Positions 29,201 through 54,415 of a stretch of 64,000 nt of DNA are shown piece after piece. A model generated the notes under the pieces. The model ran no database searches. It was not told where the DNA came from and worked only from the letters and a program-made list of their open reading frames with translations. Position numbers and translations under genes: made by a program. Origin of the DNA: Klebsormidium nitens (lineage: Eukaryota > Plantae > Klebsormidiophyceae); assembly GCA_000708835.1 (NCBI GenBank), contig DF237233.1, forward strand, positions 1 to 64,000. Reading direction: 5' to 3'. Numbering within the stretch: position 1 is the first letter of the stretch; each line of letters starts with the position of its first letter.

Positions 29201-32200
29201 GACTCATATGACTGAAAAAGCAGCAACTATTCTTCTTTTGTCATGAAATCCACGTGTATAAGCAAACGGCAAAGCAATCCGCTAATATATTTGCGAGGCA
29301 GTCAGTAAGAGACGAATCGGACTGACAATATAAAGTCAGCCAAAGCACATCTTAGCCGCAGGGATGTGACAAGTACGCAAGATATTTAACAAGCCGTCAA
29401 AACCAGACCCAACAGAGATTTGACTGGTTTCAAGGAGTTAAGTCTAGTCTGCAAACGAGCGGGCATCTTTGCCAACTCCTGCTCACTCTTGCCCTCCCTT
29501 TTCGAAGGAAGGTGACAACCTCGGAAAGCAAAACGCCACATACCTTTACAAGAGTCATCAAGGATCTGGGGCGCGTGATGTCAATATTCAGGTGGGGCCT
29601 TTCTAACGCCCTTGCCTATGGTAAACTCGATCGGGGCAGTCCGAGCGGGATGTGTGCACACTTGGCTCGTGATCACAAACCAAAGATCAACCGCACGCCG
29701 CCATTGCCCATAAGGAGTCGGTCCCTGATTCATATGCTACTCTATCTGCTATATGACATTCAACGGTCTTAATGGACGACTCGAAGGAATGAAACTTTAC
29801 GTGAAATTGCGATAATAGTTCAGAAATGGCTCTGACAAACATCAATATGGCTCAAATAGTTGTAGGACAATCTGGGCTGCTGGGGCTGCTCATCCGACGG
29901 AGCCCTCTTTGCAGGTGTCCGGTAAATCACGATTTTTGATCTGGGCCTCAATCAGACACAAAAGTAGCCCTCAAGAGGCGTCTGGTCCTGAACGTACGGT
30001 GTTTGACAGCGGTAGCCAAAGATACGTCTTTCATCATTGCCATTTTCGTAGAAGAACAGACCGTCTATCAAGGATCAAGAGATTTTCTGTGGTAAGCTCT
30101 GATATCAAAAATGTGGTGACAGTTGGAAACGAAAATGGCAGACGCGATAGCCAGTTCGAGGTCAGACGCAATAGCGACAGTGAAGTGCGTCAGTCTGGAA
30201 CACAAAAGCAACCGGATGTACCGTTTTGACTTGAAAGCGAACTTTCTCTTGAACACAGCGAGCCGGCAAAAAGATCGAAGCCAAACTTTCCGAGCATTAA
30301 AATACCAGTACATGTTGGCAAGGCAATCAGCTTCCTCCGAATGTACGTGGGCAGATAGTGCCCTGATCGCACATGGGCCATCCTTGCCAGAAGGAAACGA
30401 ACACGTAGCAAGCGGTGCCGACCGGACGAGCTTGAACTAGATCCTCCAATCTGGAAACTTTCGTACGGGACTGGGCACGGGAATGATTGCTATTCGCCAT
30501 CCAGAGTCAACTATCAGACACGAGTGACCGCCGAACGTCGACAAAGACCATCGTGCGGTTTTTCACCGGAAGACCCGAGATCCGGCAATCCGCTCGACCA
30601 GGATTGAAAGAGTCCAAGTTTGGCCACCTGCTCGCCAAGGTCCTATTCATCATCGCCGTTCGTACAAGCATGACGGATCCAAGCAAGGTGCCGCTAAGAA
30701 GGGTTTGCGTAATCAAACCTGAAAACGGCGGCGAGGAGGCAAAGCGAAGTTTCAATCTTGAGGTTTGAGAAGAGATTCTTGTTAATGCTGGATCGATTGG
30801 ACTGAACTATTCCGGCCGGAAAGCAGACAACACGGCCGATACAGTTGATCAGAGCGCGAGTTCAAGGCGCCAAGGACAGCCATGGCGGTCCCTGCACCAA
30901 AGAGTTGGCGCCGGACTGCGAAGCAGCGTATACGTAAAGTGGCCATTTTCTGGCGGCATGACATGATTGATCGACTAACAAACCATCACCACATCCCTTA
31001 ATTAGGCATGCATTTCTCTCAACCACGTAGCGCCTGTAAAGCATTAAGCAGGCTCGTCCATAGAGCAAATCGACATTCACTAAAACCTCATGATTAGTGA
31101 ATGTCGAATCTTCGCCGGCAGGAGACTCACGTATGTAGTCGAGCGACGGAGATGCAAATTCGATACCGTCAATATTGTTAGGTGCTGCGAAAGGCTCTCA
31201 GAACTCCCCGTCGTCAGAGGTCTGGCGATCTGCGCCAAACTTGTTCCATCTTTGCCCAAAAAACCTCCGATCGAAGCTCGAGATTCTCAGAGCAACAAAT
31301 AGCAAGTCGTCGGCTGCTTGCCAAGTAGAATTGACTTGCAAATCTCATCTTCCATGAGAAAACAGAAAGCCTGAGAGGCGAGAAAAGTCCGCGGGAACGT
31401 ACGGAGTTTGTCGGCTAGCAGGGAGGATTAAGAAGACGTGCGGCGAGTCTGCAAGTCTCTCAAAAACTGACAAGCGAATGCAAAATTATAAAGGGATTGC
31501 AGTCGGCTGATCTGACCACAACGAGGCTCTCAAGACGTAGATACCGAGGCATGGCGACATGCGCCAACCTCGTCATTTCATCCTTGCCAATTCGAGAAGG
31601 TTAAAATTCACTCCAGATATTGTTCCGAACCGAAAGTCGAAGCGTAGCCCAGTGGCAAGTTGTCGGCTGCTTCGAAAGGGAGCGTCAGATTGCATGGCTG
31701 CTTTTACGTCTAGTTCATTGCATCGACGAGCCTGAAAGTCGAGAAACAGGGGCAACATGGCATGAACGGAGGCTGTCCGCCGGTGAGAAGGACGGGGTTC
31801 GTGCAGCAATTGAAAGGCCACAGATACGAAGGAGCGAAGGAGGTGGGGCAAGAGAACCATCCTCTATGAATCCGGCGAAGCACTTCAAAAGAAAAAGACA
31901 ATATATTGGGTCGGCTACAGAGCGGCTGCAGACGTGCTTGCAGACGTGCTTGGCGGACACAAACACGCCAGTCCAAGTTTAGACGCGACCAACGACAGAG
32001 GAGTGCGTCGTTTAGTTGCACATATGCAGAGAGTGAAGGAAGACTGACTGGAATAGTTGAGCTCTTTTACACACGCTCGAAGCCGAACTATTCCAGTGTT
32101 CATCAAAGTAAGCGTGCATGCTGACGAGGCACTCAGGACCGTCAGAAAACATGTCCGGCCAGTAGCGCCATAACTGTTCGTGGGCCATCCTTGCCCGAAG

Positions 32201-35200
32201 GAAGTAGGGCACGTGGCAAGCGCGCTCCAAAAAGTTCCAAAAAGCTGCTCAAACGTAGAAGCCCTCTTCCTACATTTTAAAGAGAGGTGGCCTTTGTTAG
32301 CGATAAGGAGTAAAACCCTGGAACCAAATCGACATATCTGACTGCGGCGATCAAGGAACTCAAAGGAGTTGACCAGCGTTGGCAATCTCATTGCCAAACT
32401 TCTGATTATCATTGCCGTCGCTACTACAGATTTGATGGTCATGAACTATCTGCATTGGCAAAGGAGGCGAAGAAGCTTTGGGTGCGTGCAACCATTTCTT
32501 GCGGGTACAGAATTGGTTTAGTAAGGTCCGGAATAGACACAGGAGAGTCAAACCAGAGCTCGCCTCAAGAGCCAGGCCAACTATGCCCCAAAGATGGTTG
32601 AAGATTCCTGCACGTGGCCATTGGTCGTCAAAGTGCAGCGCAACGCAAAGTGGGCGCTGGCAGCCGGCACGATTCTCTGTGTCAGCACCGGGAGCCCACA
32701 GATGAGGATGAAGCGAAGGAGCTGGGCGGGCGAACCCATCTTTTCAATCCGGCGGAGCACTTTTGAGTATAGAAGCAGTCATTCTGAGGGCGGCTGAAGA
32801 CGTTCATGGCACACACAAACACGCCAGACAAAGGGTAGATGCAAGCAACGACAGAGAAGTGCGTCGGTCAGTTGCGCATATGCAGAGAGTGCAAGAAGAT
32901 TTCGACTTGAGTAGCTGAGCACTTCTGCACAAGCTTGAAGCAGAGCTATCCAAGCTCTTATCCAAGTGCATGCTGACGAGGCACTCAGAACCCTCGGTAA
33001 ATATGTTGGCTAGTAACGCCATACCTGCTCGTGGGCCATCCTTGCCAAAACAAAACGGGGCTCGTGGCGAGCTGGCTCAGTCCTTCCACAGAGTTCCTCA
33101 AAACCTAGATCGCCCTCTACCCGGCAAAATGGAAACGAAGTTGACCTTTGTTGGCCACAAGGAGTTAAGCCCTGGTACCAGATCGACCGACAACAGAATC
33201 GCTTCCTGCGGCAATCAAGAACTCGAGTTGAGGGCTGGCATTTCATTGCCGAAATCATGAGTATCATCGCCGTTCGTTGAAGAATAACGGTTCCAAGCAG
33301 CTGACGCTACTACGGACTTGATGGTCGGGGGATAGTCGGAGATCTGGAACCGACGAAGAAGGAAAAGAAGAGGAGATTCGACTTGACTAGCTGGGCTCTT
33401 CTACAAACTGTAACAGCGAATTGACGACCGGTTTAGAACCAAGGTTTCTAGGTAGCTGAAAAGGCTTCATGCTGAAAAGGCAATCAGGACCCTGCGCTGA
33501 CTACTTTGGCGCCGTGCTCGTGGGCCATCCTTGCCAGACAAGAAGTCATGATTGGGACACGTGGCACGCGGTTGGCATACTTTTTCGCCGACATTACTGA
33601 GCTCAGGACCCAACGAGATTGGGAATTGATTTGACGGGTAGTCACCATCTCGTATCAGTCTTTGAACAGGAACAACAAAATCCACAGACGGCAGAAAACT
33701 TCCCTGCGGCTTTCAGAGGATGTTGCTCATACTGACGAGCTGTTCGCCGAGCATTTAGACATCATTGCCGTCCTAGAGTAACGAACTTGACCAGCTGCCG
33801 CTACCACTAAGATGAGGATCCTAAAGTTGGATTCGAGAAGGAGTCTAGCGATCTTCGGAATTAAGTCGAGAATGCCGACGTGATGCCAGTGGCGAGAACA
33901 ACTCCTGCTGCGCGGGACGCATAAAAGTTCAAGGCGGTTGAAAGAGACGCACACTGGTTCCAATTCCAACTTCAGTGGAAGGGTGTTCCAACTGGCAACC
34001 TTGGGTGCTACGAGGCTCTCAGAACGCGAATCAACAAACACGTGGCAATCTGCGCCAGACTTGGTGTTCCAACCTTGCCGTTCCAAGGAGCAAGACCTGA
34101 AAGTCTGGTCCACGTTGTGTTACAAACGGAAAGCTGAAGCAGAGCCAGTCGTCGGTTGCTTCAAAAGATATGTTAGAGTTGCAAATTGCAGCGTCCTCGT
34201 GAAGACTGTCAGGCCTGAAAGTCTTCTCACAGTGAAGAATCTGCGAAACCCTCGTGGAGCAGCAACTGGGCTGCGCTTGCCTTCACACGGAAGCGAGAAG
34301 AGACGGTTGCAATACGAAAGCAGCTCACCATCAAATAGACTGACGACAAGAACAACCAGACGTGCATGAAACCTTGTTAATGTTGAAAGGAAACATTGGG
34401 TAAGCAAAAGAAGGTGGGGGAAAAGAACCATCCTTTTTGACCCGGCAGAGCATCTGGGAACAGACAACACTGTGTGGTGGCGGCTGCAGATGGAACGAAT
34501 GGCCGACGCGACAACGCCCGTCCAAGTTTAAACTTTAGACGCAAGCAACAATCAGAGAAGTGCGTCGGCCAGTTAAGCTAACGCAGAAGGGTTAAGAGAG
34601 ATTGGACGTGAATAGCTGGGCTCTTCTAAAGACTGCAATAGCGAGTCGACTACGAAATTGAGATCCTATTGGTAGACTTCTGCTGGCGCGGCCATCAGGA
34701 CTCGCCGGTTATCTATGGCAACCAGCGCCGTGCTCTTGGGCCATCCTTGCCAGACACAAAGTCATTAATTAGACACGTAGCGCGCTGTAGAACTTTTTTG
34801 CCAGCATTACTGAGCTCAGAAACCACTGAGATGGGGAATCAATTTAACGGCTAATCACCACCTCGTATCAACTTTTGAATGCGAATTACAATACCCAAAA
34901 ACGTAAAGACTGTTTCCTGCGGCTTTCAGTAACTTCTCTGCCACTGACGAGCTGTTCGCCAGGCTACTAGTAAGCATCTCTGCCGCTCGTCCAAGAATGA
35001 TGGATCAAAGCGGCTGTCGCTACCCCAAAAAGAAGATTCTGGCTTGACCAGCGAAGGAGCCAAACGACCCTAAGTCATGAGCATCACGCTCTTACGCACT
35101 CTCGCATAGTTGAACCTCACTCGTCTGCAAAAGGTTGCAACAAAGTCAGTAAGGTGGGGGCCAGAAACTCTCGCCTTGAAGACCACGAGAAACCAATGCC

Positions 35201-36744
35201 AACGATGCATACATACTTGAGACAGAGGGTTACATTCGGCTAGTCTAGGTGTTGCGAAAGGAACTCAGGACGCGGCACGAAGGCTGAATTTGGCACTGTG
35301 CGCCAACTTTATCCATCTTTGCCAATCCAAGGAGCAAGATTGAGAGCTTACTCCAACCACGACTTCGCAACGTCAAGCCAAAAGGGGTGGTCGTTGCTTT
35401 GAAATATAAGTCGTCTAAGGAATCTCAGTGTCTATTTGATTGACATCTAGTCCAAAAGTCGCAAAGCAACACAACATGGACGAAGCAAACTTGCTGGGGA
35501 GGAGGACAAAATCTGTCCAACAAAGCAAAAGCTATATACGAGAGTGTATGGCCGCGCTTCCCTTTCAGAACGAAAGCAAAACACAGTTGATAGCAGTGCA
35601 ATTCAAACCCAGAAAGACAAGAGGAGCAGACGTTCTGGCCAGGCAATTCATTTCAATTAATAACTTTGGAAGGGCAAGGAAAGAGTTCTGGTATAGCAGA
35701 GAAGTGACGATCTGAGACAAAACACCCTCATAGCAGGTTCTGCACAGCGCTTCTGAACGAAACTGGATTTCTTGAAACAAAGTAAGGGAGCATTTGACGG
35801 ACAAGAACATTCGTCTTGCACATTTTGGAACTGCGTCGTTATCGAGGGCGTTCGAATATGCTACGGCGAGAAGTTGTAACGTTCAGGGTTCCAAATCGGC
35901 CATTACAATCCAGAAACGATGGAGCAATCCGACACCGCACCCGTACCTGTGGCTTTTTCAACCACAACTGCGCATCGCTATCGCCCACATAGGATCACGT
36001 GCCTGCTTCGACGAGGCGCAAGTAAGGTGTTGCTTTTTACCTCTGGGCGGGCTAAAAGCCCGTCGACTCAGACCTCGGATCTAAAACATGTGGCATGGGT
36101 GACACTTGCAGAAGAGACGGGAAGTCGAGCACAGCTTCCCAATCCAGGGGTTCGACCTTTCAGTTCCGTTCTTATTGTCAAGAGATGAGAAATGACTGTT
36201 TGTCATCCTAAGCATCATTCTGCCAAACCATAAAGACATCAATGAAAATGCTATCACCAAGTGTTGCGGATCCGCAAGGGCATTCAGCATACGACATTTC
36301 ACACATGGCCACACTGGCCAGAGCCCATGTATATTACATCTTCGCCAACACTGAGTCGCACTCAGCGGGAACGGAATCAGAAAGCGAATGGTCGCAACCT
36401 GCTGCACCAAAGTTAATCACCATGTCGTCAAAATGGGTCGTTCAGTGCTCTTACAGCAAACGCACACGCGGCTCTCCCGCACCTTACTCAACTGTCACCG
36501 TCACAGGGCAAAGCATCTCGTAACTGTGTGAAATCAAGAGGCTTTACGAATTTTCAAGACCTACGCGCGAGGGTTCGGCTGGCTACTTCGGTTGTCTGCC
36601 TCAGCAATCACAAAACGCAGTTTCCCACATCAGCACCGGAATGGAGCATCTTTGCCAACTTGACAAGTCACAAAATGAACGCACAACAGCCTGTCGACGT
36701 CTCTGGAGGAACTTCTCGGAAAGGAAACTTGGACTTGATATAGA

Positions 36745-37005
36745 CAAGACTGGTGCGCGGCCCAATTTCGGACGATTTTGACTTCGGACGGGCAAACCCG
36801 AAATCTAATTTCGGACTATCTGAACCACTCTGCGGCTGCACACGCGCGTGTGTAACGCTGTCGCGCGCGGCTCGTCTCCTAATGGTACTCTGAAACGCGA
36901 CGTCGAGCGCACGAGCAGCCGCAGACTGGGTTAACTGAGTCCGAAATTAGGTTTCGGGTTTGCCCGTCCGAAATCAGAATCGTCCGAAATTGGGCGCACC
37001 AGCTT
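36745..37005. mobile_element. Foldback MITE (~260 bp) with ~90-bp TIRs
   Basis: The left arm CTGGTGCGCGGCCCAATTTCGGACGATTTTGACTTCGGACGGGCAAACCCGAAATCTAATTTCGGAC...CTGCGGCTGC (from 36750) matches the reverse complement of the right arm ending at 37002. Each arm has three TTCGGAC sub-repeats. Possible TAGA TSD (36741-44 / 37006-09). Confidence 0.85.
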
Positions 37006-39152
37006 TAGATAACCAGACGTTATGCTCGCTAGCCAGGCCGGTTGGTTCATTGCCAAGAGCAGCCGTCAGAGAGTGCAGAGCATCAACTAAATCTAGTTTC
37101 AGAGTTGGATTGAATTCAATATCTGATTTTCAATCAGTTTTTGATGCAGGACAGTTTGGTAGTTCGTGCATTGCCCCACTACCGATTTCTGTCCGCTGAA
37201 CAGCATGGCCGCTTGCCCGCTTCGGTGCTTCGTCCGTGCCTTAAAGGACAGTAAAGAACAGTCGCTGAGGGCATTTGGGTCTCAATTGCGCGTCCATCAT
37301 GCTTAAATGAAAACACTCGATAATGTTTGCAAAACTCGAGAGTTTGTTTCGGTGGCGCTGCCGTAGAGCACACGGCAGACGCAACACGCTAGTGCAAGTT
37401 CGAAACGATCAGCAAACAAAAAGTGCATCAGTCGACGGCGCCTATATATTGGCGAAGTGAGGGATATGGACTGAGTCAGACCGGTTTTGCATACACTTAT
37501 GCGAGCCAGCACACGGTTGAAGCGGCTTTCAAACAGCCCACCTGCTGTCAAGGCAATCGGCACCTTGCGTCGAACAGTTCTCGCAACTAGTGCCGTGCTC
37601 GTGGGCCATCGTTGCCTGAGACGGTGGGCCACGTGGCAAGCGCTACATGGACCTTTTAAACAGTATAACGAGCTGAAAAGCCCTCAGAAGTGGGTAAGGC
37701 GTGTACCTTGGGTTGCAGCTTGCAAAACTTGCATGTCTCAAATGTTCTAAGTGAAGCGATGCAGGCCCTTCCACGTCTAACGATTTTAGGCTTAGCCATC
37801 TGATCGAAGCGACGAGCCACACGAGATTAAGAGAGTCAGCGGAACGGAGAAACGGTTAGCTAGAAACCCGAAGGGAACGATGGGAGCGCTGCAGACCTGG
37901 TTGACCAGATGGACCTTTCTAGCAAAGATGCGAAGATGAGAGAAGCCCTCGTACGGTAAGAGAAGCCCTCGTATGGATTCCAATACGGACTCGATCTTCA
38001 TCGATCTTCATTCGCAATCCATATTCGAATGGCTTTCTGCGGCATTCAAGACGAGCAGAATAAGGCATTGGCATTCTACTTTCCAAGCTCCCATACATCC
38101 GAGTCATTACCGTTCGGCCAAGAACGAGGGATCCAGCAGCTGCCGCTACTATGGACTTGATCTTTATGGATTATCCGACTGGCCTTGAAAGTAGGCGAAG
38201 AACCTTTGGATGCGTACTACAAATTCTTGCGGATGGGAATCGATCAGCTGGGAAAGGTCCGAAAAACACCAAAAGCTCGAACTATAGCTCGCCTGAGAAG
38301 CCAGGCCAGCTATGCCCCAAAGATGTTTGAAGATTCCTGTACGTTGCCCGATTGGTCGTCACAGTGCAGCGCAATGCAAAGTGGCCACTGGCAGGCGGCA
38401 CGACCTCGAACCCCAAGGTGTTAATACCCTCCTGAAAACCCCGGCACGGAATGGAACAGAATGCAATAGATACAATCAGAAGAGCATGCCCTCTCGATTC
38501 GTGACTAGTGGGACCGATCCCCACTGCCGTGAATTGTGTGCAGTAGGATATAAGAGAGATACAGATCGTTGGTCATAAGAATGGGTTGCAGGGGGTCGCG
38601 CTGGGTGCTACGAGGCTCTCTCAGGACATCACCTGACACTATGCGCCAGACTTGTCGTTTCTTCCTTGCCGTTTCAGAAGAAATGGCAGATTTTCTGGAG
38701 GCTTTCTGCTCTCCAACTACTGTTACGAACTTTGAAATCGCATGCAGAGCAAGCGTCGGTTGCTTAAAAACAGAGCGTCAAGTACAGAATGCAGACGTTT
38801 CTATCTAAAACAGAATGCTCGACAATCAAGAGGAAAGCTGTGATAGGCAACGTGGCAGGGACGGCGAGCCGCAAAGAATCTGCAACTTTAATAAATGCAG
38901 AAAGGGGGTTGCGCTTGCCCATGAGTCGACGACAAAGAAGAAAACGCCTCGTCGTGTTTATCAGACAAACAGCAGAAAAAGAAACATCCGGATGACACGG
39001 CAGAACGGGGAGCCCAAAGATCAGGATCAAGCGGAGAAAGTGGGGCACCCTCCTTTTTGGCTCGGCGGAGCACTTCAAGGACAGAAGCAGTCAGTGTGAG
39101 GGCGGCTGCAGACGTTCATGGGGGACACAAACACGCCAGACCAAGGTTAGAT

Positions 39153-39590
39153 TGAAGCGGCGCTGAACAGAATCGACTCGGGGTGAGAGAGATACGGGCT
39201 GGAGAGACGATATACGAGGAGTTGAATACAAGCTGAAGATAGCTGTTGAGTGATAGCTCTCTAAGAGATTGGAGTTCGGGGAGNNNNNNNNNNNNNNNNN
39301 NNNNNNNNNNNNNNNNNNNNNNNNNNNNNNNNNNNNNNNNNNNNNNNNNNNNNNNNNNNNNNNNNNNNNNNNNNNNNNNNNNNNNNNNNNNNNNNNNNNG
39401 TCTAAAAGCTTATCGGACGGTTCCCAGGCGCGCGGTGCACGTGGGTCTTATCGGACGGTCACGCGGTGAAGCAGTAACCTGGACACGTGGCGTGTAGTGA
39501 TTCAATAAGTCGATAGCGTATAATAACGGACGATGCGCGGCCGCGAGTTCAGCGCGCAGCCGGGAGTCGGTGCGCAGTCGTGCCGTTACA
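39153..39590 (-). mobile_element. Probable solo LTR (or LTR element collapsed in the gap) inserted in an array unit
   Basis: Starts TGAAGCGGC and ends GCCGTTACA (TG...CA, 7/9 terminal inverted match). Flanked by the 5-bp direct repeat TAGAT (39148-52 / 39591-95). Removing it restores the array motif CACGCCAGACCAAGGTTAGATGCAA. It contains a 116-N gap, and the orientation is tentative. Confidence 0.75.
39284..39399. other. Assembly gap (116 N)
   Basis: Run of N. Confidence 0.99.
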
Positions 39591-39931
39591 TAGATGCAAT
39601 CAACGACGGAGAAGTGCGTCGGTCAGTTGCGCATATGCAAAGAGTGAAAGAAACGTTCGACTTGCATAGCTGAGCTCTTCTACACACGCTCGAAAGCCAA
39701 ACTATCGAAGCGCTTATCGAAGTAAGCGTGCATGCTGACGAGGCACTCAGGACCCTCGACAAGTATGTACGGCCAGTAGCGCCATAAGCAGTTGCTCGTG
39801 GGCCAGATCCTTGCCCAAACAAAACGGAACACGTGTCAAGCGCGCTCAGAACTCCCGAAAGTCTCAAGCGTTGGAGCCCTCTTCCCAAAATGGAAACGGG
39901 CTTGACCTTTGTTGGTTGTAAGGAATTGACA

Positions 39932-41011: not shown

Positions 41012-44000
41012 TGACACGGAACCAAGTCAACCGACGACAGAATTGTTTCCTGCGGCAATCAAGAAATTGCAAGCATCAAGTATATTCGGGAGTTGGCAAT
41101 CTTGTTGGCCAACTCCCGAATATCATTGCCGTTTGTTCAAAGAACGACGGACTACGTACCAGTTGGCGCTACTACGGACTCGATGGTGGTGGATCTAAGA
41201 GGAGGCTAACGACCTTTGAGTGCGTGCAACCAGTTCTTGCGAATGCTGTATCAGTCAAGGGAAGGTCGTAACACAGCCAGCCAGGAAAGACGAGCCGGCG
41301 GTTTGTTTAAGACATCCTCGGACGGCTTTTGCGGACATTTGTATCGATTTTGACAATGGTCTGGTCCTACTCGACTTGAAGGCACCACGTTACCGCCCCA
41401 GAGAAGTTGTACGTAAAATTGTCGTCCGAGTGCGGTGCAGCGCAATGCTGCGCAAAGTGGCCTCTTGCAGTCGGCACGACCTTAAGTCACCAATGTGACT
41501 AATCTCTCTTGAATCCACGCAGGTCAGCTAACTGAAGTGGGCTAATGAGGATTTGAAGTACAAAATGCCTCGACGTGATTTAAAACGACAGCGGCAAGAA
41601 CAACTCCCGCTGCACGGGACATACTGATATGTTATTGCGGATAAAACAGATGCAAACTGGTCACGGAAGGAGGGTTTTTTTTGGCAACCTTGGGTGCTTC
41701 GAGGCTCTCAGAATGTAGCTAACAAGCGTGGCTATCTGCGCCAGACTTGTTGTCTCATCCATGCCGATCGAAAGAGCAAAAACTGGAAGCATACTCAAAA
41801 CATTTAAGGAGTACTGAAAGCTGGAGCATTGCAAGGCGTCAGCTGCTCCAAATAACAGTTCCAATTGCAGAGTGTGGTTTCTACGAGGAACACAAATAAC
41901 AGAGATGACGATTGTAGAAGCAACATGGCACAGGTGCAGTCTGTCCGGTTCCGCCAGAAAGAAGGAAGTTGCGCAATCCAACCAAGATGTTGCAAGACCA
42001 TCGCAAGCCCTTTGGAGAGCAGAAGAAGCGCTGCGTGTGCCGTCTGAGACGGAGGCGAGGAGAGACCCAAGCAATCCGATCATAGAAAAGCTTTAAACGG
42101 TAGAACAAAATAGTGTATTTAACACGTAAGTATCAAGCGCGCCACATAAGGTAGAAGCGAAGCAGGTGGGGCGGAAGCACCATCCTTTTTGACCCGGCAG
42201 AGAACGAAACGGAAATAGAAGACGATTTGTGGAGGCGGAACGAATTGGCTGACGCGATCACGTCAGTCCAAGCTGAGATGCACCCAACGAGCAGAGAAGT
42301 GCGTCGGTTAGTGGCGCATACGAGGAGAGGGGGGGATCCGAATCTGGAAAGATATTGGGTTCTTCTATACACTGTGACGGCGACCACATCTGAAAGCCCG
42401 GATTTTCAAGTATACTTCTGCTGGCGGCAATCAGCACACATTGTCCATCAACCCTGGCAACGAGCGCCGTGCTCGGCGTGGGCCATCCTTGCCAGACACA
42501 AAATAATAATCAAGACACGTGGCCCGCTTTAGGATACATTTTCGCCAACCGTACTGAGCTGAAAACCCAATGAACCTGGGAACTGATCAGACGGCTAGTC
42601 ACCAAGTCGTGTCAAATTCAAAAAGGAACGACGGAATCCACAGACAGGCAGAAAACTTTTCTGCGGCTTTCATGGGATTGCTACTGTTGACGAGCTGTTC
42701 GCCGAGCTTTCCATCATCACTGCCGATCGTCCTTAAAAAACAAATTAAGCAGCTGTAAACATGAGTATCCTGGAGTTGACCACGCGAAGGAGTCAGACGA
42801 CCTTCGGGTTTAGGTTGAGAATGCCGACGGGAGTCAGATTGCCCTTGTGGCGAGAACAACTCCCGCTGCGTGAATGCATCCCTTGTTATGGCGGGTGAAG
42901 TGATGCACACGGATTCAGGGAGGGGTTTCCAAGGGCAACCTTGCGTGCTACGAGGCTCTCAGAATGCAGCAAACTTCTGGCATTATGCGCCGGACTTGCC
43001 ATTCCATCCTTGCCGTTCCAAGGAGCAAGACCTGGAAGCCACAGTCCACGTTGCTTACAAACGGAAAGGTGAAGGATAGTAAGTCGCCGGCTGCTCGAAC
43101 CGATAAGCTCAACTGCAGATAGCAGTTTTCACGTGGAACAGGAAGCCTGAGAGTCGAGAGAACGACCGTAAAAGCAACATGGTACGAACGGATCTTGTCC
43201 GGATCCGCCGGAACGTTAACGGAATCCGTACCGGTCAAGATCCCGCAGGCCAAATTTCAATCCTTCGTAAAGCAGAAGAAACGTTGCGGGTGCCTTCTGA
43301 GACGGAAGCTGAATGAGACAACAACAATATCAAGAAAGGGCTTGAAAGACAGAGAGCACAGCACTGTGTATAACATTGAAAGCCTATAGATAGGGATGAA
43401 GCGAAGGAGGTGAATAACTGAACCATTCTTTTTAACCCGGCACTGCACTTCAACAACAATAGAACGCCTTCTGAGGTGGCGGCTGCAAACGGAAGGAATG
43501 GCTGACGCGAAAACGCCAGTCCAAGCTTAGATGCAACCAACAATCAGAGGAGTACGTCGGCCAGTCAAGCATACGCAGAGTCTACTTCTCTGAGTAGACT
43601 TCTCTGGCTCGGCAATCAAAGCTAGCCGATTACCTCTTGCAACTATGCCGTGCTCGTTGCCATCCATGCCAGACACAAAGTCATGAATGGGACACGTGGC
43701 ACGCTTCAGCATTCTTTCCGCCCAGACCCAATGAGACTAGAACTGATCAGTCAATCACCATTTTCGTAACAACTTGAACTTCGGACGGATGAAATCCGAG
43801 CGACAAAATCAAAGACGGCAGATTTTTCCTGAGGCTTCCTTTGGATATTGCTCTAGTGGTGACGACCTGTTCGCCGAGCTTTTAATCATCATTGCCTGAA
43901 AATCAAACCAATTTAAGCAGCTGTAGCTACCACTAAGATGAGGAGCCTGGATTTGACCTCGCAACGGAGTCAAACGACCTTCGGGTTTGAGTCGAGAATG

Positions 44001-47000
44001 CCGACGTGATTCACATTGCCAGTGGCGAGAACAACTCCCGCTGCGCGGGACGTTTCAAACGTTGTGGCGGATGAAAGAGCTAGACGCACACTGGTTCCAA
44101 TTCCAACACCAAAGGAAGGGGGTTCCAACTGGCAACCGTGGGTGCTACGAGGCTCTCAGAACGCGAATCAACAAGCGTGGCGATCTGCGACGGACTTGAT
44201 GTTCCATCCTTTGCCGTTCCAAGGAGCAATCCCTGGCCAGTCCGCATTTTTTCACAAACGGAAAGCAAGTCGTCGGCTGCTCGACCCAATAGCATCAACG
44301 CAAACTGCAGCTTCCACGTGAAATGTCAGGCCTAAAAGTTAAAAAAACGTCCGTCGTAAGCAGAGTGGCACTGGCGGAGTATGTCCGCCGAGTAAGAGGA
44401 GCAGTCAGAACGGGCTTCTTGCAGTGAACAGTTTGCAAAACCACCGTGGAGCAGGCAATGCGCTGCGCTTGCCTTCTGAGAAAAGAGACGGTAGCAATCC
44501 GAAAGCAGCTTCGCTTACAAACAAAAAGACGACGTCAAAACCAGAAAACCAGACGTGCATGACACGTCAGACTTTGGGGGTCACAGGGGAAGAAGCTAAG
44601 GAGGTGGGGAACGGGAACCGCCCTTTTTGACCCGGCAGAGCAGCATGAATCTAAGAACAAAAGACATCTTATGGTGGCGGCTGCAGAGGGAATGAAATGG
44701 ATGTCGCGAACGCTCCAGTCCATCTTACATGCAAGCAGCGACAGCGAAGTGCTGGTCCATTCAGCATACGGAGAGGAGAGAAGGAGATGTGACTTGAATA
44801 GCTGGGCTCGTCTACATACAGTAACAGCGAGTCCACGACGTGCTTAATTGTCTAAAGTACACTGTTGCTGGTGTCAATCAGCACACTTCGCCGAGTTTCT
44901 TTGGCAGCGCCGTGCTCGTGGGCCATCCTTGCCAGACACAAAGTTGGAGTGGCCCGCGCTTTAGCATACCTTTTCGTCAACAGTGTTGAGCCCAGACCCA
45001 ACGTAGATGATTTGATGGCTGATTACCACCTCGTGCCAAACTCTGAATTCAAACGGAAAAGTTTAAAGACGGCAGAAAGATTTCCTGCGGCTTTCATGGA
45101 ACAAGGCCCTCGTTGACGAGCTGTTCGCCGAGCTACTACACATCACTGCCGATCGTCCTAGAATGACCGATCCAAGCAGCTGGCGCTACAACTGAGATGA
45201 GGAATCTGGATCTATCATGAGGAAAGCGAGGGAGTCACACGACCTTGGGTTTGAGTGACGGATTCTCAGGCACCGACCAAAGCTTCGCAAGTCAAGGGTT
45301 TGACCTTCTGCTGGATTCTCCGATATGCCCCGCCAGGCCATCTGTATCGACCGCGTATCACTCCGGGGACCACTTCACTTTTCGACGTTGTAAAAACGAC
45401 AGTGAGAGGATGTTACCAGCGGCAGAAAAGCAATCAGCATTCCTGAGGTGAGGCCTGCAGTACTGGCCATGCTGGCCAGAGCATCGGTCACATCAATGCC
45501 GTTCTTGAGAATGGGAACAAGAAAAGCGCCTGTAAAAAACAACCAATCTATTGCATGGTGGTCGCAAAGCCGCTTGGCCACGATCCGCTTCAACCTGTGC
45601 TTTTCAAACCTGACTTAAAAGCGTCCGACTCAAGCTGCTTGGTTCTGCCGCACCTTACTCAATCAATTAAGAGGCAAGGAATTCCAAAAGAATTGCGAGA
45701 GAAGCTTCACGAAAGCTTTCAAGGATGTTTCGGCGTGCGGAACTTTGGCCCGCTGTCTCGGCTGTATTCGTTTTGGCACTGTATGGCAGCTTGTCGATTG
45801 AAGCCACATTTGCATTACTACGTGGCAACTTTCAAGTCTATTCAAGTCATCAGAACGATCACGCACAACATGCACAGAGGAGAGCTTGTCGGAGGAAGAG
45901 ACGTGGGCGCAACACTAAGAAGAAAAGCAGACATAAGGCTCGTTCAGAACGCGACGTCGGCCGACAGATTTGGCTACAACAGTGCCCTGAATGCAAAGTT
46001 AAGTGGCCTAGAGCAAAGGCACGCAACGTGGTACCTCGTGCAGCAAGATCGCCGTTGCTTTATCTGCCGAGGGAGAATTGGTATCGGATAATTCCCTGCG
46101 TGCGACTATCCTGGAGCAGTATAATTTGTCAAGTGGCCTCAGTTGCATAAACTGTCCCGCTAAAAACGTCGAGATCCAACGCGGACAAGACCACGGTGGC
46201 CAATAGAGTTGCGTTCCTCGTCATTGCCTTTTTCGAAGCAAAACGAGAGTGAAAACTTTCTATGGTGGCAGCGAGAAAAGCAAATGGCAGACACCAGCTA
46301 AGTTTCAGTCGGATACACTTGGCATAGTAAGGATTGCGCGTATGCAGAAAGCAAGATAATCCATCAACTTGGATAGGCTGAGTTCTTCTACACAACGAGC
46401 CGGCAACACGTACTCTTGAAGCCGAACCTTCCAAGCGCTAATCAAGCGATCGTGCATGCTGACGAGGCACACGGGATCTTCGTGGACATGTACATCCAGT
46501 GGCGCGATAATTGCTCGTGGTCATCCTTGCCCGAAGACACGTGGCACGTGGCAAACGCTTAGAGACATTTCAATGTGATGCTTCATTCTAGAAGCCCTCT
46601 TCCTACAATGGAACCGGAGTTGACCCTGTTGGCCATCAGGAGTTGACCCCCAGAACCAAGTCCACTGACAACAAAAGTGATTCCTGCGGCAATCAAGAAC
46701 CCCAAGAACATAAGCGCTGGCAACCTCATTGCCAAACTCCTCGTTGCCATTGCCGTTCGTCCAAGTATAACGGGGTGAATCCAAACAGCTGGCGCTACCA
46801 CTTAATGGTCGTAAGACTGGACCTAACCAAGGAGGCAAAAAGAACTTTGGCTGCACGCAACCGATTCTTGCGGATGCGGTATCGATCAGGGAAAGGTCCG
46901 AAAGACACACAGGATAGTCAAACCAGAGCTCATCTTGGGAGCCAGGCCAGCTGTGGGCTAAAAGGTTTTCATAGATTTCTGTACGTGGCCACTGGTCGTC

Positions 47001-50000
47001 AAAGTGCAGCGCAGCGCGGATGGTCACTCGCTGTCGGCACGGCCTCAAACAACAAGACGGGCGTACCCCTTCTAATCCATGCAGCTCAGCCAATTGCAAG
47101 GCGCTAGTGAGGGTGTAAGTCAAGAATACCGACGCAATTTCAATCGCACGTGTCGGGAACAATTCCCGGTGCACGGGGCGTATATCAAGGGCGAGTGAGT
47201 GAAAAAGATGCACACTGGTTCGGAGAGAGAATCCCAATTGGCAACCTAGGGTGAACGAGGCTCTAGAATGTGAGAAGCGTGGCGATCTGCGCCGGGCTTG
47301 TTGTTCCATCCCTGCCGTTCCAAGGAGCAATCCTTGGAAGCCCAGTCCACATTGTGTTCCAAACGGAAAGCTGAAGGATAGCCAGTCGCTGGCTGCTAAA
47401 ATCCCATATTAAGCAACGTGGCAAAAACAGAACTACAACTAGAAAAGTGCAATTTACACGTGGAAACAGGAAGCCTGAGAGGCGAACGGACGACCGAAAA
47501 GCAACATGGCACAAACGGAGTCTTTCTGCTGGGGAGAGGACGCAAGTCGTGCACTCTTGAGTGTTTGCAAGCCCATTGCAAGCCCTTCGAAAAGCAGGAG
47601 AAGGGCTGCGGGTGCCTTCTGAGCCGGAGGCGGAAAGACAGACAAGCTTTGAAATTCAGCAAGCAAAACAGTGTGTATAATACGTCGAAATGGAGACCCG
47701 ACTGATAGGAAAGAAGGGAAAGCGGGTAAGATAACGATTTGTTATGAACCGGCAGAGCACTGAATCTGGGAATAGATCGAAGACACTTTATGGTGGGGGA
47801 ACAAAGTGGGTGACGCGATCACGCCAGTCCAAGCTTGTCCGCAAGCGACGATCAGAGAAGTGCGTCGGCCAGTTAAGCAAATTCAGAAGGCATAGGAAAA
47901 TTTGACTTCGACAGCTAAACTCTTCTAAACACGGTACAGCGAGTCGACGATTCGCTTACGGCGAAATATTTCAAGTAGCTATCTGCTGGCGAGGCAATCA
48001 GCACATCACGGCGATCAGCTTTGGCAACTTAGCGCCGTGCTCGTGGGCCATCCTTGCCAGACAAAAGATCGTAGGTGGGACACGTGGCACGCTTTAGCAT
48101 ACTTTTTCGCTAACATTAAGCTCAGATCTACCGAGATTGGGAACTGATCAGACGGCTAATCACCAACTCGTCGCAACCTTTCAAATTTGAGTTTGAATGG
48201 TTAGACTTACGACAGCAAGATTTTCGGCCTACGCACAGGTGGCTCCCAAGAACAGCTGCTTCTGACGAGCCATGTTCGTCAAACTTTCGAACATCATTCC
48301 CGATTGTCTTTGATGACGAAGTCAAGCGGCTGTCGCTACCAGTGAAATGAGGATTCTGGATTCGGCCTAGCGGAGGGGTCAGATGACCTTCGGGTTCGAG
48401 CAACAAGTCCTCACGCAGTCTTGCAAACTCGATATTGACTAGTCAGGGGGGCTTGCCACACGGCCAGTAAGGCGGGGTCCAGAAACTCTCCCCTTGAAGA
48501 CCACGAGCGACCGATACCAAAGATGCATTCATTACTCAAGAAAGAGGGCTACAACGGGCTGGTCCAGGTTGCGAAAGGCACTCAATACGCGGCACGAAGG
48601 CTGGCCCTGGCAATGTGCGCCATACTTGTTGCATCCCTGCCATTCCTAGGGGCGAACTTGAAGAATTGAAATCGGAAACGAGACCTGTGTTGGTTGCTTT
48701 ATAGGAGAAAGTCTGAAAGTGCGCCGTCTATGTCTGTTTGATTGCGCATCCAATCTGGCAGTTGAGAAAACAACCATAAAGGCAACCCAAACACGCCTGT
48801 ACGTCTGGGGTTAGACGCAACAAACGACAGAGGAGTGCGTCGGTAACCGAGCCGGCAACACGCTTGACGCCGAACTTTTTAAGCGCTTATCGATAAAAAT
48901 ATCGGGCCTGCCGACGAGGCAATCAGGACCGTCAGAGAACATGTACGGCTAGTTGCGCTATGACTGCTTATGGGCCATCATTGCCAAAACGAAATGGGGC
49001 ACGTGGCAAGCGCGTACAGAATTTTCAGGATGTTGCTTGAACTAAGGAGCCCTTTTAATGTAAGTAGGACGGAGTGGGCACATTAGAAATCCGACCTCAG
49101 GAACGAAGGGCCATGCAAATTGGCCGACGACAAAACTGCTTGTTACTGCAAACCAAGACGCTCGACTACGTGAGCACTGGCAATCTCGTTGCCAAACTCC
49201 TGAACATCATTGCCATTCGTCCGACGCCTAGAGTAGAGTTGCTGCTACCGTTCTCAGTACGGACTTGATGGTTGTATCTGGATTGGCAAAGTAGGCAAGG
49301 AGCCTTCAAGTTCGAGCAACAAATCCTCGTGAACGCGGGATTGATCAGGGGAAAGGTCATAACACAGCCAGGAAACTTTGAGCCAGCCACAAATCGAAGT
49401 GGTGCTGCTACAGCGATGCCCCAAAGATGCTGGAAATTCCGCTACGTGGCCATCGGTCGCCTGCGTGCGGCGCAGCGCAAAAGTGGCCACTCGCAGTCGG
49501 CACGGCCTTACTCAATCACCAGATGTGACCACCCCCTCTCGAGTCCACGCAGGTCAGCTGATTGAAAGGCGCTAGTGAGGATTGAAAAAAAAGAATGCTC
49601 CGACGTCCAGACTTCAGTGGCGAGAACAAGTCCCGCTGCCTGGGGCGTATCAACATATTATGGCGGATGAAAGAGATACACTTCACGACGGGAGTCCCAA
49701 TCGGCAACCGTGGGGCTACGAGGCTCTCAGAATACGTTCAACAAGCGTGGCGATCTGCGCCGGACTTGGTTTTCCATTTGCCGTTCCAAGGAACAATACC
49801 TGGAAGTCTGGTCCACTTTGTCTTACAAACAGAAAGCTGAAGCATAGCAAGTCGTCGGCTGCTCCAAAGGATAGCCTCCTCTGCCAGTTGCAGTTTTCAA
49901 CTGGAACAGGAAGCTTGAGATTCCAGACAACGACCGTCATAAGCAACATGGGAACATGGCAGAGACGGAGTCTGTCCGCCGGGGAGGAGGACGCGGCAGA

Positions 50001-53000
50001 GCACTAAATCCGAGAACAAAAAACATTTTCAATGTGGTGGCGGCTGCAGAAGGGACGGATGGCCGACGCGGACACGAGTCCAACTATAGATGCAAGCAAA
50101 GGTCAGAGAAAGTGCGTCGGCCAGTGAAGCAAACGCAGTAGGGATAGGTAGATCTGACTTGGATACTCTGCGGTTCTTCTACAAGCTGTACAGCGAGCCG
50201 ACCACACGCTTAAAGACAAGGTTTGTACGTGACTTTCTGCTAAGTACAATCAAAACTGGCCGATCACCTCTGGCAACTAGCGCCGTGCTCGTGGGCCATC
50301 CTTGCCAGACACAAAGTCATCGTTGGGACACGTGGCACGTTTTTGGCATACCTAGTCGAACCTAACGAGACTGAAAACTGATTTGACGGCTTGTCACCAC
50401 CTTGTGTCGATCTATGGATCCGAGCGACAAAAAACCAAAGCAGAAGGGCTGTTTTTTTGCGGCTTTCAAGGATCTAGCTGCGATTGACGAGCTGTTCGCC
50501 AAGCTACTGGACGATCAGCAGAATCAATATTGGGACACGTGGCACGTTTAGCATACCTTTTCGACAACATTACTGAGCCAGACCCAACAAGACTGGGTTT
50601 CGTTGTTAATCATCGCCTTGAGTCACCCTTTGGGCCTAAAACACTTAACCCGAAACTTTAGACTCTTTTCTGCAGCTTTCATTGATGTACCTGCCACTGA
50701 CGAGCTGTTCGCCGGCCATGCAAGTTACGAGACATCATCGCCGATCGTCATAGAGTGACGAATTCAAGGAGCTTCCGCAACCATTCAAATAGGACTTTTT
50801 GATGATCATGGACTCGCGGAGGAGTCAAACGACCTTCGGTTTGAGTGACGGGTTCTCACGCATACTTGCATTGTCAAACTTCACTCGTCGTCAGAGATCG
50901 TGCGCAACAAAGTCAGGAAGGTGGGGGGCAGACATTCTCGTCTTTTGAAGACCACGAGCAACCAATACCCAAAATGCATTCGTACTCAAGGACGAGGGCT
51001 ACAATGGATTAATCTAGGTGTTGCGAAAGGCGCTCAGGAGGCGGCGCGAAGGCTGGCCCTGGCAATCTGCGCCTACTTGTGCATCCTTGCCATTAGGAGC
51101 GAGATTGAAGAATCAAATCGAAAACAGGGTGTTTGTTGCTGTCTAAGAAGAAAAAGTCAAAAGCCCGTCTACATCTGTTTTGACTTTCGGCATCCGAACT
51201 GGGGGTTGAAAAACAAGTTTATGACAGGCAAAACGGTACGGATGAAGGCTGTCTGTCGGAGAGGGGGACGGAGTTTGTCTTTACTTGGTCGAATGAGGGC
51301 AATCAAACCTTGCAAAGTTCTACTCCGCTTAGAGTCAGCAGAAGGATGACATCATTGCCCAACAGATACGCAAGCATATTCAAGACCGATCAGCCCGCTT
51401 CGGCCCTGTAGGAACTTCATCGGAGAAGCAGGGCTCACCAATCACATGCTCAAGCGAAGCAGGAACCCGTGGATCGCCACGGTCTGCAGAATCTCCGAGC
51501 CGCTAGATTGTCCGTGATCTTCTTCAACGGTTCGGTCGGACATTCCGAAGACAGGCGTGCTCTGCTTACAGTATCAGCTAGAAGCGGCGATGGGATCCAC
51601 TTGCAATTTAAAAGCTCAAGACGATGGAAAAACGATAGCGGACTTGAACCGGGATCCTGCTGGCCCCTTGAAAAAAAGTCATTCAGTAATTCGAAACCGT
51701 CTCTCAGAGACAAAGCTAACATCCTCAGATACAGCGATCAACGTGTGAGCCCAGCCGGATCTTCGCAACTGACGGTCGGACCTTGCTTGTTCAGCTCTTT
51801 CCCATGGGTGACCTCAGCGCGTCATCCCCAACATCCTCTGGTTATAAAGTCCTTATAAAATCCTGAAAGAGCCGGTTTGATGCAAAGAACTGTCAATTGG
51901 CAAGGACAGTCAGCCGATGTCAAGCTCCAGAGGTCCCTCGTAATGCTGGCCGAAGGGCAACATAACAATGCCGTGCATTGGACGTGGGAGAGTGTGGCAG
52001 TCAACTTAAGTACCGCTGGTCGTGGAGCCATATACAGCGGTGACACGACCGCATCTTAAAATCCAAATCTTCTTCTCTTCTTTCACCCCTCACAGCAGAT
52101 GACCCAGATTCTTGCGCACAGATAATCCGTCAAATGGCAACCACTTGTGAACTCTTCGCAAGTTCGACAAGCTTTGGCCAAAGAACTTTGCGGCCTATGT
52201 GCGCAAGCATTTGTTGTGCTTTTATAGCAACCGCATCGGGAATTTGTTCAAAGAGATTGTTGCGTTGCTACGTGGCATCTTTACAAGCTAAACACGGCGC
52301 ACGATTCAAAGCACGGTAGCAGACTGAAAATACCTCGGCGGACAAAAAAGCTCTTCTAACAAAGACAGACAAGCTCAGTGGAACGTGAGGCAGCAGGCCG
52401 GGCAAGGGGATGGTCGAAGGGTTCAGCCAAAAAGGTGCTGTGCACGCAATTTATAGGGTGACCTTGAGCAAAGGCAGGAAAATTTCCGTACCTCATAAGA
52501 TCGCCATTGCTTGGTTTGCTTAGGTAGAAATGAACCGCACCCATTCAACGAGTAGAACAATTGCAGACAAAGCACAGTTCACCGGAAGGCATCAGGATAG
52601 CTTCGTACATCAATGACCGCTGTGGCCAAACGTGCATTGCTTATCACTGCCCTTCTTCGAGAAGGCTTGATATGCAAAGGTCATGAGTGAAAGGTTATTG
52701 ACGACTGTAGACGCAACGAGAGAAACGAACGTACACGCCAGCCTAAGATCGGACGCAGTCAGGAACAGGGAATCCGACGTTCACTGGCACGTATGCGAGT
52801 GTCCAAAACAACCTCTTAAGCTAGGTTTGTAAACAAGCAAGCCCGCCGAAACCCTGAAGCTGACCTTTATGTCATCTCCAGGCGAAACGGGTGCTCACGA
52901 GGCATTCAATCATATCAAGTCGCTTTGACAAGTAGCGCCATGCTCGCGGGCCATCCTTGCCAATTTGTAATGAGACATGTGGCAAGTGCTAATGAATCTT

Positions 53001-54415
53001 TGATGTTACTGAACCCGAAGCCAACTTTTTGCTTTTCGTAACTGAAAGGGAACTCAACCTTTCGTCAGTAGCCAGAGCCGACCTGGCTCCGAGGAGTTAC
53101 CAAATCGGCCAACAACAAAACGGACCCCTGCGGCTTTCAGGAAAATAACATCCTGGCATTGGCAATTGTGCGCCAAGCCTCGGCTAAACATCATTGCCGT
53201 TCAATCGCGAACGCAGGCCGCTGCCGCTAACACGGATTTCAAGGCTGTGGATATAGTTTCACAAATGTGGGAATAAAACCTCAGATTCCAGCAATAAGTC
53301 CTCGCAAAATGGAATCGATCAAACTCCACCAATCGGGGAAAGCTCGTAACATGGTTAACAGTAGCAAGAAGAACGCTGAAATCGACGACCACGAAAACTT
53401 CTCTTAAAAATTGCATCGAACTTTAGACAGCCTGGGGATATACAGTTGGTATTTATTGGTGGTGCGAAATGCACTCAGGAGGGAGTTAAATAATGGCGAT
53501 CTCCGCCAGATTGGTTCCATCCTTGCCCTTCCAGTGCGCAGGACGTAAGCAACTCGCTTGCCTCAATTGTTGAGGATTTAAGATTGAAACGCATTGAAGT
53601 ACCAAATGCTTAAGCTATGCGAGCTTCATGTTGCGTCCAGGCTGTCCGGCTTTGACACAGAGTCGGAATGGGGAAAGCAATCAAGAATGAACCCTGTCTA
53701 TAAGAAAGAGCGACTGGGTTTGCAGAAGCTTTGTAATGCAGTCCATGACTGCTCTTGCCTCTTCAAATTACATTGAGGGAAGAGTAAGAGGTTGGTGGAG
53801 CGAGTAACTGCCCTTCCTTCAGAAAGACAACAAGATGCACACAGTTGCAGCTTGGCTTCCACAATATCGAGTGGCCACGGAAAGGACATAGCAGACATGT
53901 GCGGTGTGATATCACAACAGCGAACTAGGGCGGAAAGTACTGAACAGGTGAGGAGAAAGAACCATCAATAACCTCGGCACTCCCCGCAACCTTCAGGTAT
54001 ACCACAGTAACTGCAACGGACGAGTCTTCCTTAATGGGGTTCGTCAACCAGCAATCGAACCGTTTGTTTACTCTGCAACTTTAGCACTTCAGAAGCAGGT
54101 TACCGCCAGGCTGCCCCTTTCCTCTGCGGCTTCGTTTTTCCTCCCCCTCTCACTCTTGCCGCTCCGGTTTGGTGCGCGGCGCCCCCGCCGCCACTCAATA
54201 GGTTCCTGCAGCGCACCGCACTCGGCATCAGTTCCACTTCTCGTTGCTTGCGAGCGACACGTCTGAACGCGGTGAGTTGGTCAGCGATGTGAGCGTCCGA
54301 TATTGGCGTGAGCTCATCAAAGTTCGTTTTCTACTTTATTTTCTTGCGGGCAAGCTTGAAATGATTGCCCCAGCCCCTGACGGCGCCCGGATCTCAAGAT
54401 TTTAGCACCGCTCTA

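Follow-up and report, generated by a model that had tools for sequence, protein, structure and literature searches.

What kind of element fills the gene-poor interior of contig DF237233.1 of the streptophyte alga Klebsormidium nitens: the remains of a protein gene, a satellite, a mobile element, or a set of genes whose product is RNA? The question is raised by the window analysed here, the first 64,000 nucleotides of the contig (GenBank assembly GCA_000708835.1, positions 1 to 64,000 of the forward strand), in which the original prediction saw a multi-level repeat array built from a dead repeat-protein gene and turning into complex satellite DNA. We favour a different answer, to which we give a probability of about 60%: the region would be the most recently duplicated part of a ~51-kb minus-strand array of small non-coding RNA genes, box C/D-like in type and lying downstream of a gene with a BRCT domain. 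The units from which the array is built are real, locked to one strand and better conserved than the DNA between them.

The conserved element is a 57-83-nt unit on the minus strand. Its 5' end has a short arm N-GGC followed by A, R, N and a C-box-like GAU-G/A. The middle consists of 8-15 variable bases, a 4-7-bp UGGC/GCCA hairpin and 15-25 further variable bases, and the 3' end of a D-box-like C/U-UGA, exactly 2 bases and the arm GCC-N'. Judged by sequence, this layout of terminal stem, C box and D box is that of a box C/D (kink-turn) small nucleolar RNA (snoRNA). The consensus across unit classes retains GGCA, GAUG, GGCG..GCCA, CUGA and GCC, and units outside the duplicated section have unrelated interiors, for example those at 36274, 28230, 21193, 19082, 17760, 17229, 16598 and 12689.

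Detection of the units gives the same strand by every route. A covariance model of the terminal stem and internal hairpin, R1, built from 35 units and run without filters, yields 71 matches at E<=1; 70 belong to the minus strand and a single one to the plus strand, and the 56 matches at E<=0.02 are all on the minus strand, these unit counts and the copy counts below coming from an assembly with two gaps of N inside the repeat region. An nhmmer profile of the core has 49 of 49 matches on one strand, and the composite pattern GGC-C-like box ... YUGA-NN-GCC has 28 minus-strand and 0 plus-strand occurrences, against 0.015 per shuffle. The shared motif noticed in the original prediction is a genuine one: written as the 10-mer CAT[CT]N[ACT]TGCC, it has 41 plus-strand copies and 0 minus-strand copies, and the 19-mer around it has 11 occurrences against 0.00 in shuffles. 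The exact core patterns are absent from the metagenome and viral contigs searched. Spacing of the units is irregular, 200 to 1600 bp. Repeats do lie at 30030-53560, where they had been placed, but the family is wider: the same-strand array of 56 box C/D-like units spans 5357-56399, and the predicted region is therefore only the densest, youngest part of ~51 kb.

Comparison of paralogous blocks shows where conservation resides. Alignment columns within units are 0.67 identical against 0.54 for the spacers (Mann-Whitney p = 4e-17), the values by class being 0.83 vs 0.55 for b, 0.71 vs 0.51 for c1 and 0.70 vs 0.47 for a1. In the repeated modules b and c (see below) nearly all well-kept islands are in or beside units; module a has no island above the cut-off, and in module d, known from 3 copies, islands are scattered along the block. 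The GGC/GCC arms are invariant. The first pair outward of them is formed in 59% of units, by six pair types, and the terminal stem is extended by a mean of 0.96 pairs against 0.55 +/- 0.10 with shuffled partners (0/2000 shuffles reach it). Much longer stems are found, for example, in the units at 19082, with 8 bp (3-bp core plus 5, UGAAAGGC/GCCUUUCA), and at 28230, with 9 bp (core plus 6, on GAGGGC/GCCCUC). At its fourth pair the internal hairpin has G-U in 10 cases, G-C in 8, A-U in 6, C-G in 1 and U-A in 1. The covariation score over both helices is 0.148 vs 0.087 +/- 0.012 (0/500 shuffles), and no slid register scores as high as the true one.

Position 6 of the C box and position 1 of the D box form a Watson-Crick pair in the C/D kink-turn; here the two positions are G-C in 23 cases, G-U in 7 and A-U in 6, with 9 mismatches, and GAUA goes with UUGA in 6/8 units while GAUG does so in 7/33 (Fisher p = 0.007). 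The GA and U positions that make the kink-turn contacts (tandem G.A, U.U) are invariant across units. TGA of the D box is invariant in alignment A1, most units having CUGA, ~1/4 UUGA and a few AUGA. GAU of the C box is nearly invariant; ~18/56 units have UGAU[G/A], two have a perfect box (GUGAUGA at 42660, AUGAUGA at 43828) and the remaining ones have GGAUG, AGAUG or GAGGAU. Our data show that both stems and the predicted C6-D1 pair change in a compensatory way, and they are evidence that the predicted frame of the unit is a structure under selection.

Several properties of the units weigh against their being box C/D RNA genes. Since the units are paralogues, covariation counts overstate the number of independent events, and three of the six GAUA/UUGA units come from one class. 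Position 2 of the C box is G or A in ~2/3 of units (GGAUG/AGAUG for UGAUG), and the constant 2-nt spacer between the GA of the D box and the GCC arm breaks the canonical kink-turn register. There are no recurrent C'/D' boxes, UGAUGA or CUGA being found beside the internal hairpin in single copies only, as at 47988. Rfam returns nothing at gathering score in the whole window, and its sole sub-threshold match, SNORD103 at 42453-42496(-) inside unit 42421-42498, is at chance level (19.9 bits, E 9.3). The RNAalifold consensus of 35 units retains the invariant 3-bp GGC/GCC stem only, with no covariation, and single units, folded one at a time, have weak z-scores that lie mostly between -0.5 and -3. 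Class c1 is least conserved upstream of its D box, at what would be the guide site, and invariant in its 5' half. These non-canonical features are the reason why the units are named box C/D-like here and are taken as candidate members of the snoRNA family.

The same features feed the serious rival, in which the units are repeated modules by which a long non-coding RNA binds protein or RNA, or cis elements acting as single-stranded DNA or at the DNA level, with a mere resemblance to C/D RNAs and no small RNAs of the type found in small nucleolar ribonucleoproteins (snoRNPs). Non-canonical boxes (2-nt spacer, variable C-box position 2, no C'/D'), the absence of an Rfam match, the obligatory internal UGGC/GCCA hairpin, which is not standard in snoRNAs, and the G-box GCCACGTG conserved upstream of type-1 units (a1 and c1, see below) at a distance of 10-25 nt are all compatible with it. 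We nevertheless consider it unlikely, given that the invariant GA...GA, the U/U and the covarying 6/1 pair beside a terminal stem are the exact contacts of a C/D kink-turn, and that the units keep to 57-83 nt even where their interiors are unrelated, as expected of a processed small RNA.

The organisation of the array is a nested one. Self-blastn of the whole window yields 90 direct and 3 inverted matches, the direct repeats having 65-80% identity and being located at 31742-35343, 37527-39930 (fragments), 41018-45272 and 46334-51216. All three repeat lengths announced in the original prediction are recovered. The ~0.85-kb unit appears as 31939-32418 vs 32795-33273 (offset 856, 73% identity); the ~1.2-kb unit, said to be repeated three times, as the equivalence of 41593-42322 with 42849-43575, of 42409-43169 with 43593-44354 and of 42150-42755 with 44588-45182; and the ~2.5-kb unit as the match of 46396-47397 to 48848-49863, at an offset of ~2.45 kb. 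With 46334-48847 taken as reference block U, mapping of the whole window onto U resolves a mosaic made of modules a, b, c and d, some of them in partial copies. Their order, which had been described as fixed, is largely so both in this mapping and in the order of unit classes. Two unique inserts break the mosaic, at 35.35-37.5 kb and at 45.27-46.33 kb. The latter (45272-46334), between blocks, has overlapping plus-strand open reading frames (ORFs) at 45555-46091 (178 aa) and 45725-46150 (141 aa); the 178-aa ORF has no Pfam match.

Clustering of the 56 units leads to classes a1, a2, b/d, c1 and c2 together with singletons, identity being 72-75% within a class vs 61% between classes. The recently duplicated section, 30317-53532 on the minus strand, comprises 43 units with these classes and is recognised by its self-blastn identity of 65-80% and its class order. 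A triplet is made of type 1 (a1 or c1, GGAUGG-CCCA...), type 2 (a2 or c2, UGAUG...) and type 3 (b or d), and an a-triplet plus a c-triplet form the 2.5-kb hexamer, present twice at 46.3-51.2 kb. The reference hexamer U (46334-48847, minus strand) has, in ascending order, a1 at 46461, a2 at 46683, b at 47254, c1 at 47988, a degenerate c2 at 48236 and d at 48572. The second copy (48848-51216, minus strand) has a1 at 48913, a2 at 49152, b at 49717, c1 at 50240 and d at 51024, and it maps onto the reference as 48848-49863 = U63-1064, 50092-50405 = U1508-1838 and 50722-51216 = U1949-2440. Runs of c-type triplets account for the three ~1.2-kb copies at 41.5-45.3 kb and for a pair at 33.4-35.3 kb. 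The former (41512-45272, minus strand, b, c1, c2 repeated) map as 41512-42810 = U741-2063, 42902-43579 = U874-1554, 43983-44266 = U778-1038 and 44625-45211 = U1409-2028; the latter (33360-35343, minus strand) reads c1 c2 b/d, c1 c2 b/d. The a1-a2 doublet is the 0.85-kb repeat, two such a-type doublets (a1+a2, a1+a2) occupying 31939-33335 on the minus strand.

Segment 33511-34222 has 72.7% identity to 43647-44339, and 34223-35023 matches 44415-45189. The best matches of 33.5-35.0 kb are thus 10 kb away (43.6-45.2 kb) rather than adjacent, indicating that multi-block segments were copied too. Self-blastn, block mapping and class order together support the earlier view of a multi-level nested repeat grown by tandem duplication in a birth-and-death manner. 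In our reading the locus is a nested segmental duplication with long later divergence and not a homogenised satellite.

The individual units, all on the minus strand, are listed here with their R1 bit scores. Class c1 includes the best-scoring unit of the array, 47988-48063 (67.4 bits, E 1e-14), followed by 34685-34756 (60.6 bits), 42421-42498 (58.5), 33474-33540 (53.1), 44868-44938 (52.8), 50240-50311 (50.9, 3' stem decayed), 52896-52966 (50.2), 43606-43675 (38.1) and an isolated fragment copy, 37547-37621 (37.9). Class c2 has 33703-33774 (42.9 bits, AUGAUGU ... CUGA), 34916-34989 (42.0), 42660-42729 (42.0, with the perfect GUGAUGA C box), 45084-45155 (41.9) and 43828-43901 (23.8, with the perfect AUGAUGA and a decayed D box), and 53127-53203 (56.3) is c2-like. 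The a1 units are 32975-33051 (54.9 bits), 32123-32200 (53.5), 48913-48990 (52.6), 30317-30393 (42.4), 39737-39820 (33.0, between both N gaps) and 46461-46536 (22.0, D box decayed). To a2 belong 32341-32421 (48.9 bits, GAUA paired with UUGA), 46683-46759 (47.4), 33205-33276 (46.4), 41049-41135 (34.9, directly right of the second gap, with a long internal hairpin, fold z -6.2, inverted repeat I2) and 49152-49219 (30.6, 3' end decayed), together with the a2-like 30579-30662 (26.9).

Type 3 is represented by b at 47254-47321 (46.8 bits) and 49717-49787 (40.0), by d at 48572-48646 (50.2) and 51024-51096 (45.3), and by units classified as b/d at 42949-43019 (52.9), 31188-31261 (50.8), 41698-41770 (50.2), 34009-34084 (49.6), 44146-44220 (48.3), 53465-53532 (38.4), 35255-35328 (28.2) and 38609-38675 (22.0, decayed); 31520-31593 (51.9) is b/d-related. 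Units with an unrelated interior and a UGGCCA hairpin are found at 36274-36351 (37.5 bits) and 45424-45505 (23.1), and singletons at 51293-51364 (22.7) and 52583-52656 (19.3). The unit nearest the BRCT gene is 56322-56399 (20.0 bits). Outside the range of the original prediction the array continues on its other side with 28230-28308 (29.4 bits, the 9-bp terminal stem), 21193-21267 (29.9), 20794-20874 (18.5), 19082-19163 (24.3, the 8-bp stem UGAAAGGC/GCCUUUCA), 17760-17841 (27.7), 17229-17296 (31.6, GGCG/CGCC stem), 16598-16674 (18.2, GGGGC/GCCCC stem), 15476-15552 (37.5) and 12689-12761 (24.3), and then with the weak units 7427-7504 (19.0) and 5357-5449 (18.7), the last of the array. Near unit 12689-12761, in this older left part, 12720-13193 and 13661-14118 form a diverged direct-repeat pair with 68% identity.

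The G-box-like palindrome GCCACGTG is conserved 10-25 nt upstream, in minus orientation, of type-1 units (a1, c1), with sites for example at 48081-48089, 33558-33566, 32210-32218, 43693-43701, 50329-50337 and 49000-49008, and CACGTGGCA at <=1 mismatch has 44 occurrences vs 14 +/- 3.7 in shuffles. The palindrome GCCACGTG may serve as a promoter or in processing, or it may belong to a longer structure of the precursor.

An origin of the array from a non-autonomous element copied head to tail, be it a short interspersed nuclear element (SINE), a miniature inverted-repeat transposable element (MITE) or a Helitron-like element, would account for short conserved cores with variable flanks, and a clear MITE-like hairpin has indeed been inserted at 36753-37002. 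Such an origin is improbable, more so than the reading as binding modules. The strand bias is 70 to 1; the 2 inverted-repeat pairs in 25 kb do not frame units as terminal repeats; Pfam finds no transposase or reverse-transcriptase ORF among the 10 longest ORFs of the array, and viral contigs give no match. Multi-unit blocks are moreover collinear between copies, spacers included, which points to segmental duplication rather than insertion.

The hairpin at 36753-37002 is near-perfect and 250 nt long, with arms of 67 nt that are 90% complementary and a fold of -166 kcal/mol (z = -17). Two units flank the unique stretch of the array into which it was inserted, and its appearance is that of a MITE or of a locus for hairpin RNA.

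A complex or centromeric satellite with higher-order repeats, the destination foreseen in the original prediction, would have nested levels in fixed order and gene-poor surroundings, as is the case here from 5 to 58 kb. It is very improbable on other grounds: block copies are just 65-78% alike and neighbouring copies are not the most similar ones, the spacing of 200-1600 bp has no regular period, Tandem Repeats Finder reports no array and only two trivial microrepeats, and conservation sits in a short, strand-locked 70-nt unit and not in the whole monomer.

The protein-gene reading was examined on the level of frames, indels and homology. Of the 56 units, 21, 28 and 14 are open in the three motif-anchored minus-strand frames and 39, 34 and 35 in those of the T-poor plus strand, and unit lengths are evenly spread over the three classes modulo 3. 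The best-kept block of module b has indels of 2, 3, 5 and 8 bases between copies; mismatches in pairwise alignments of block copies have no 3-base periodicity, and gaps occur throughout. In class c2, 4/5 copies have stops at one spot beside a 19-base stretch that is identical in 4/5 copies and has one mismatch in the fifth, which argues for a constraint on nucleotides and not on protein. Pfam has no match to the 10 longest ORFs of the array, and protein word searches with the longest minus-strand ORF (269 aa) and the longest plus-strand ORF in the repeat blocks (154 aa) retrieve neither relatives nor a predicted protein of the locus. The plus-frame peptides of the original prediction (AILARHK and others) turn out to be the reverse complement of the conserved RNA-like boxes, merely translated, and do not belong to an open frame. 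The non-coding verdict is not based on the absence of protein relatives.

A tandem cluster of a dead repeat-protein gene whose exons survive as monomers can hence be set aside as scarcely credible, since the loose G-[KN]-D-x(3-4)-L-[AG]-x-x-[IL]-[AV] shared by minus-strand translations of several classes and the ~33 codons over which some copies are open stand against lengths that are not multiples of three, non-triplet indels, recurrent c2 stops, missing 3-base periodicity, the lack of Pfam and word matches, and the higher identity of units than of spacers, a preference for "exons" that a dead gene would not maintain.

Other candidates were tried and rejected. A hammerhead or other ribozyme in a retrozyme-like repeat, suspected from CTGACGAG...GAAA strings, has no Rfam match at gathering or E-value thresholds. 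A repeat derived from transfer RNA (tRNA) or a SINE was searched for with ARAGORN, which found no tRNA. The TCCCA strings upstream of c1 units have a loose resemblance to a plant promoter of small nuclear RNA type (upstream sequence element/TATA) and are at the wrong distance.

The window has a G+C content of ~50% and is without long ORFs from 5 to 58 kb. Its only recognisable protein gene is the upstream neighbour of the array, the BRCT-domain gene at 59494-63458 on the same, minus, strand; the array begins ~3 kb downstream of it. The first exon (61263-63458) encodes 732 aa of low complexity, rich in Lys, Glu and Gly, with no Pfam match, and the BRCT exon (60428-61078) matches Pfam RTT107_BRCT_5 (1.9e-8). 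A Pfam search for further exons of this gene past the array (1-5 kb) is empty. Relatives in the protein collection are P0001 (61% identity, 91% coverage) and P0002 (41% identity over 26%), the latter not being found among the metagenome contigs searched. In the region of the BRCT gene beside the BRCT exon, 60338-61402 has 5 direct-repeat copies of 64-77 nt, spaced 116-283 bp.

Over the whole array (4-58 kb) A exceeds T on the plus strand, with an AT skew of +0.03 to +0.20 that reverses sign in the BRCT gene (60-64 kb); the minus strand is T-rich. Transcribed non-coding plant RNA tends to be T(U)-rich, and the T-rich minus strand over 4-58 kb fits what would be expected of a U-rich transcribed non-coding strand.

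Both assembly gaps fall at places where a copy has extra sequence. Gap 1 (39284-39399) is inside a 433-bp stretch (39158 to 39591) that self-blastn shows to be absent from the paralogous copy at 32.7-32.9 kb, which is contiguous there. Gap 2 (40084-40947) lies between a1 (39737-39820) and a2 (41049-41135) of one block: homology to the reference block ends at 39930 (U314) and restarts at 41019 (U320), leaving 224 unique bases and the Ns where other copies carry 6 bases. Self-alignment finds no match to the edges of either gap elsewhere in the window, and no coding sequence reads across either of them.

Growth of the locus proceeded by nesting: three unit types were joined into a ~1.2-kb triplet and two triplets into a ~2.5-kb hexamer, whole or partial blocks then being recopied by unequal crossing-over. 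If the units are small RNA genes, long precursors would be transcribed from the minus strand, whether transcription reads through from the BRCT gene or starts at a separate promoter. Nucleases could trim these precursors to the units, halting at the protein-bound kink-turn and stem, and the units would be protected by the snoRNP proteins that bind kink-turns (Snu13, Nop56/58, fibrillarin). The putative RNAs are counted as orphan. A bolder and tentative extension, against which we would still bet, is that the alga carries giant strand-locked arrays of an undescribed class of kink-turn small RNAs, C/D-like with a fixed 2-nt D-box offset and an obligatory UGGC/GCCA hairpin, made from long transcripts behind protein genes and not guiding methylation of ribosomal RNA (rRNA). 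Such RNAs might have a regulatory role, cap long non-coding RNAs or sequester snoRNP proteins. If true, loci of the SNORD115/116 type would have been invented independently outside the mammals.

Large tandem arrays of orphan box C/D snoRNAs are, to our knowledge, regarded as a peculiarity of placental mammals (Prader-Willi and DLK1-DIO3 loci), and the function of these arrays is a long-standing question. A literature search found no publication linking Klebsormidium to snoRNA arrays. An alga with the same architecture would show that this architecture arises repeatedly and would give a simple, haploid-dominant, culturable organism for studying what such arrays do. The locus is in addition a clean record of array growth, from unit to triplet, hexamer and block copies, and it sets right the tempting view of such a repeat as a protein gene in decay or a satellite of centromere-like kind.

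With higher-order repeats of the alpha-satellite type the algal array shares a fixed order of monomer types that recurs as a larger block. It differs from them by the absence of a regular period, of homogenisation (65-78% between blocks) and of head-to-tail monomers, being mostly spacer. Plant snoRNA clusters combine a few distinct snoRNAs that correspond to curated families and mostly act as rRNA guides, whereas here 51 kb hold at least 56 units, with no Rfam match and with interiors seemingly free to drift. The usual source of plant snoRNAs is a polycistronic precursor, from which they are released by cutting and trimming, and the array resembles such clusters in having several units on one strand, a few hundred bases apart and presumably in one precursor (PMC5122169).

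The closest parallel is found in eutherian SNORD115/116 (and SNORD113/114), where same-strand orphan C/D genes are conserved islands in diverging repeats (PMC12429941, PMC4063771, PMC8789076), and where arrays have a birth-and-death evolution with the stem and boxes as the best-kept positions (PMC12429941, PMC4063771). The mammalian arrays, orphan and without rRNA target, are eutherian-specific and imprinted, with canonical boxes and proven expression from introns of a spliced non-coding host; the algal array belongs to a streptophyte, has 3-6 unit types per block instead of one, has non-canonical boxes and is known here from sequence alone. Both have dozens of same-strand C/D-type units, each a conserved island in a longer and faster-diverging repeat, both have subfamilies within the array and copy numbers that shift by birth-and-death and unequal recombination, and in both the stem and the C/D-type boxes are what is kept best.

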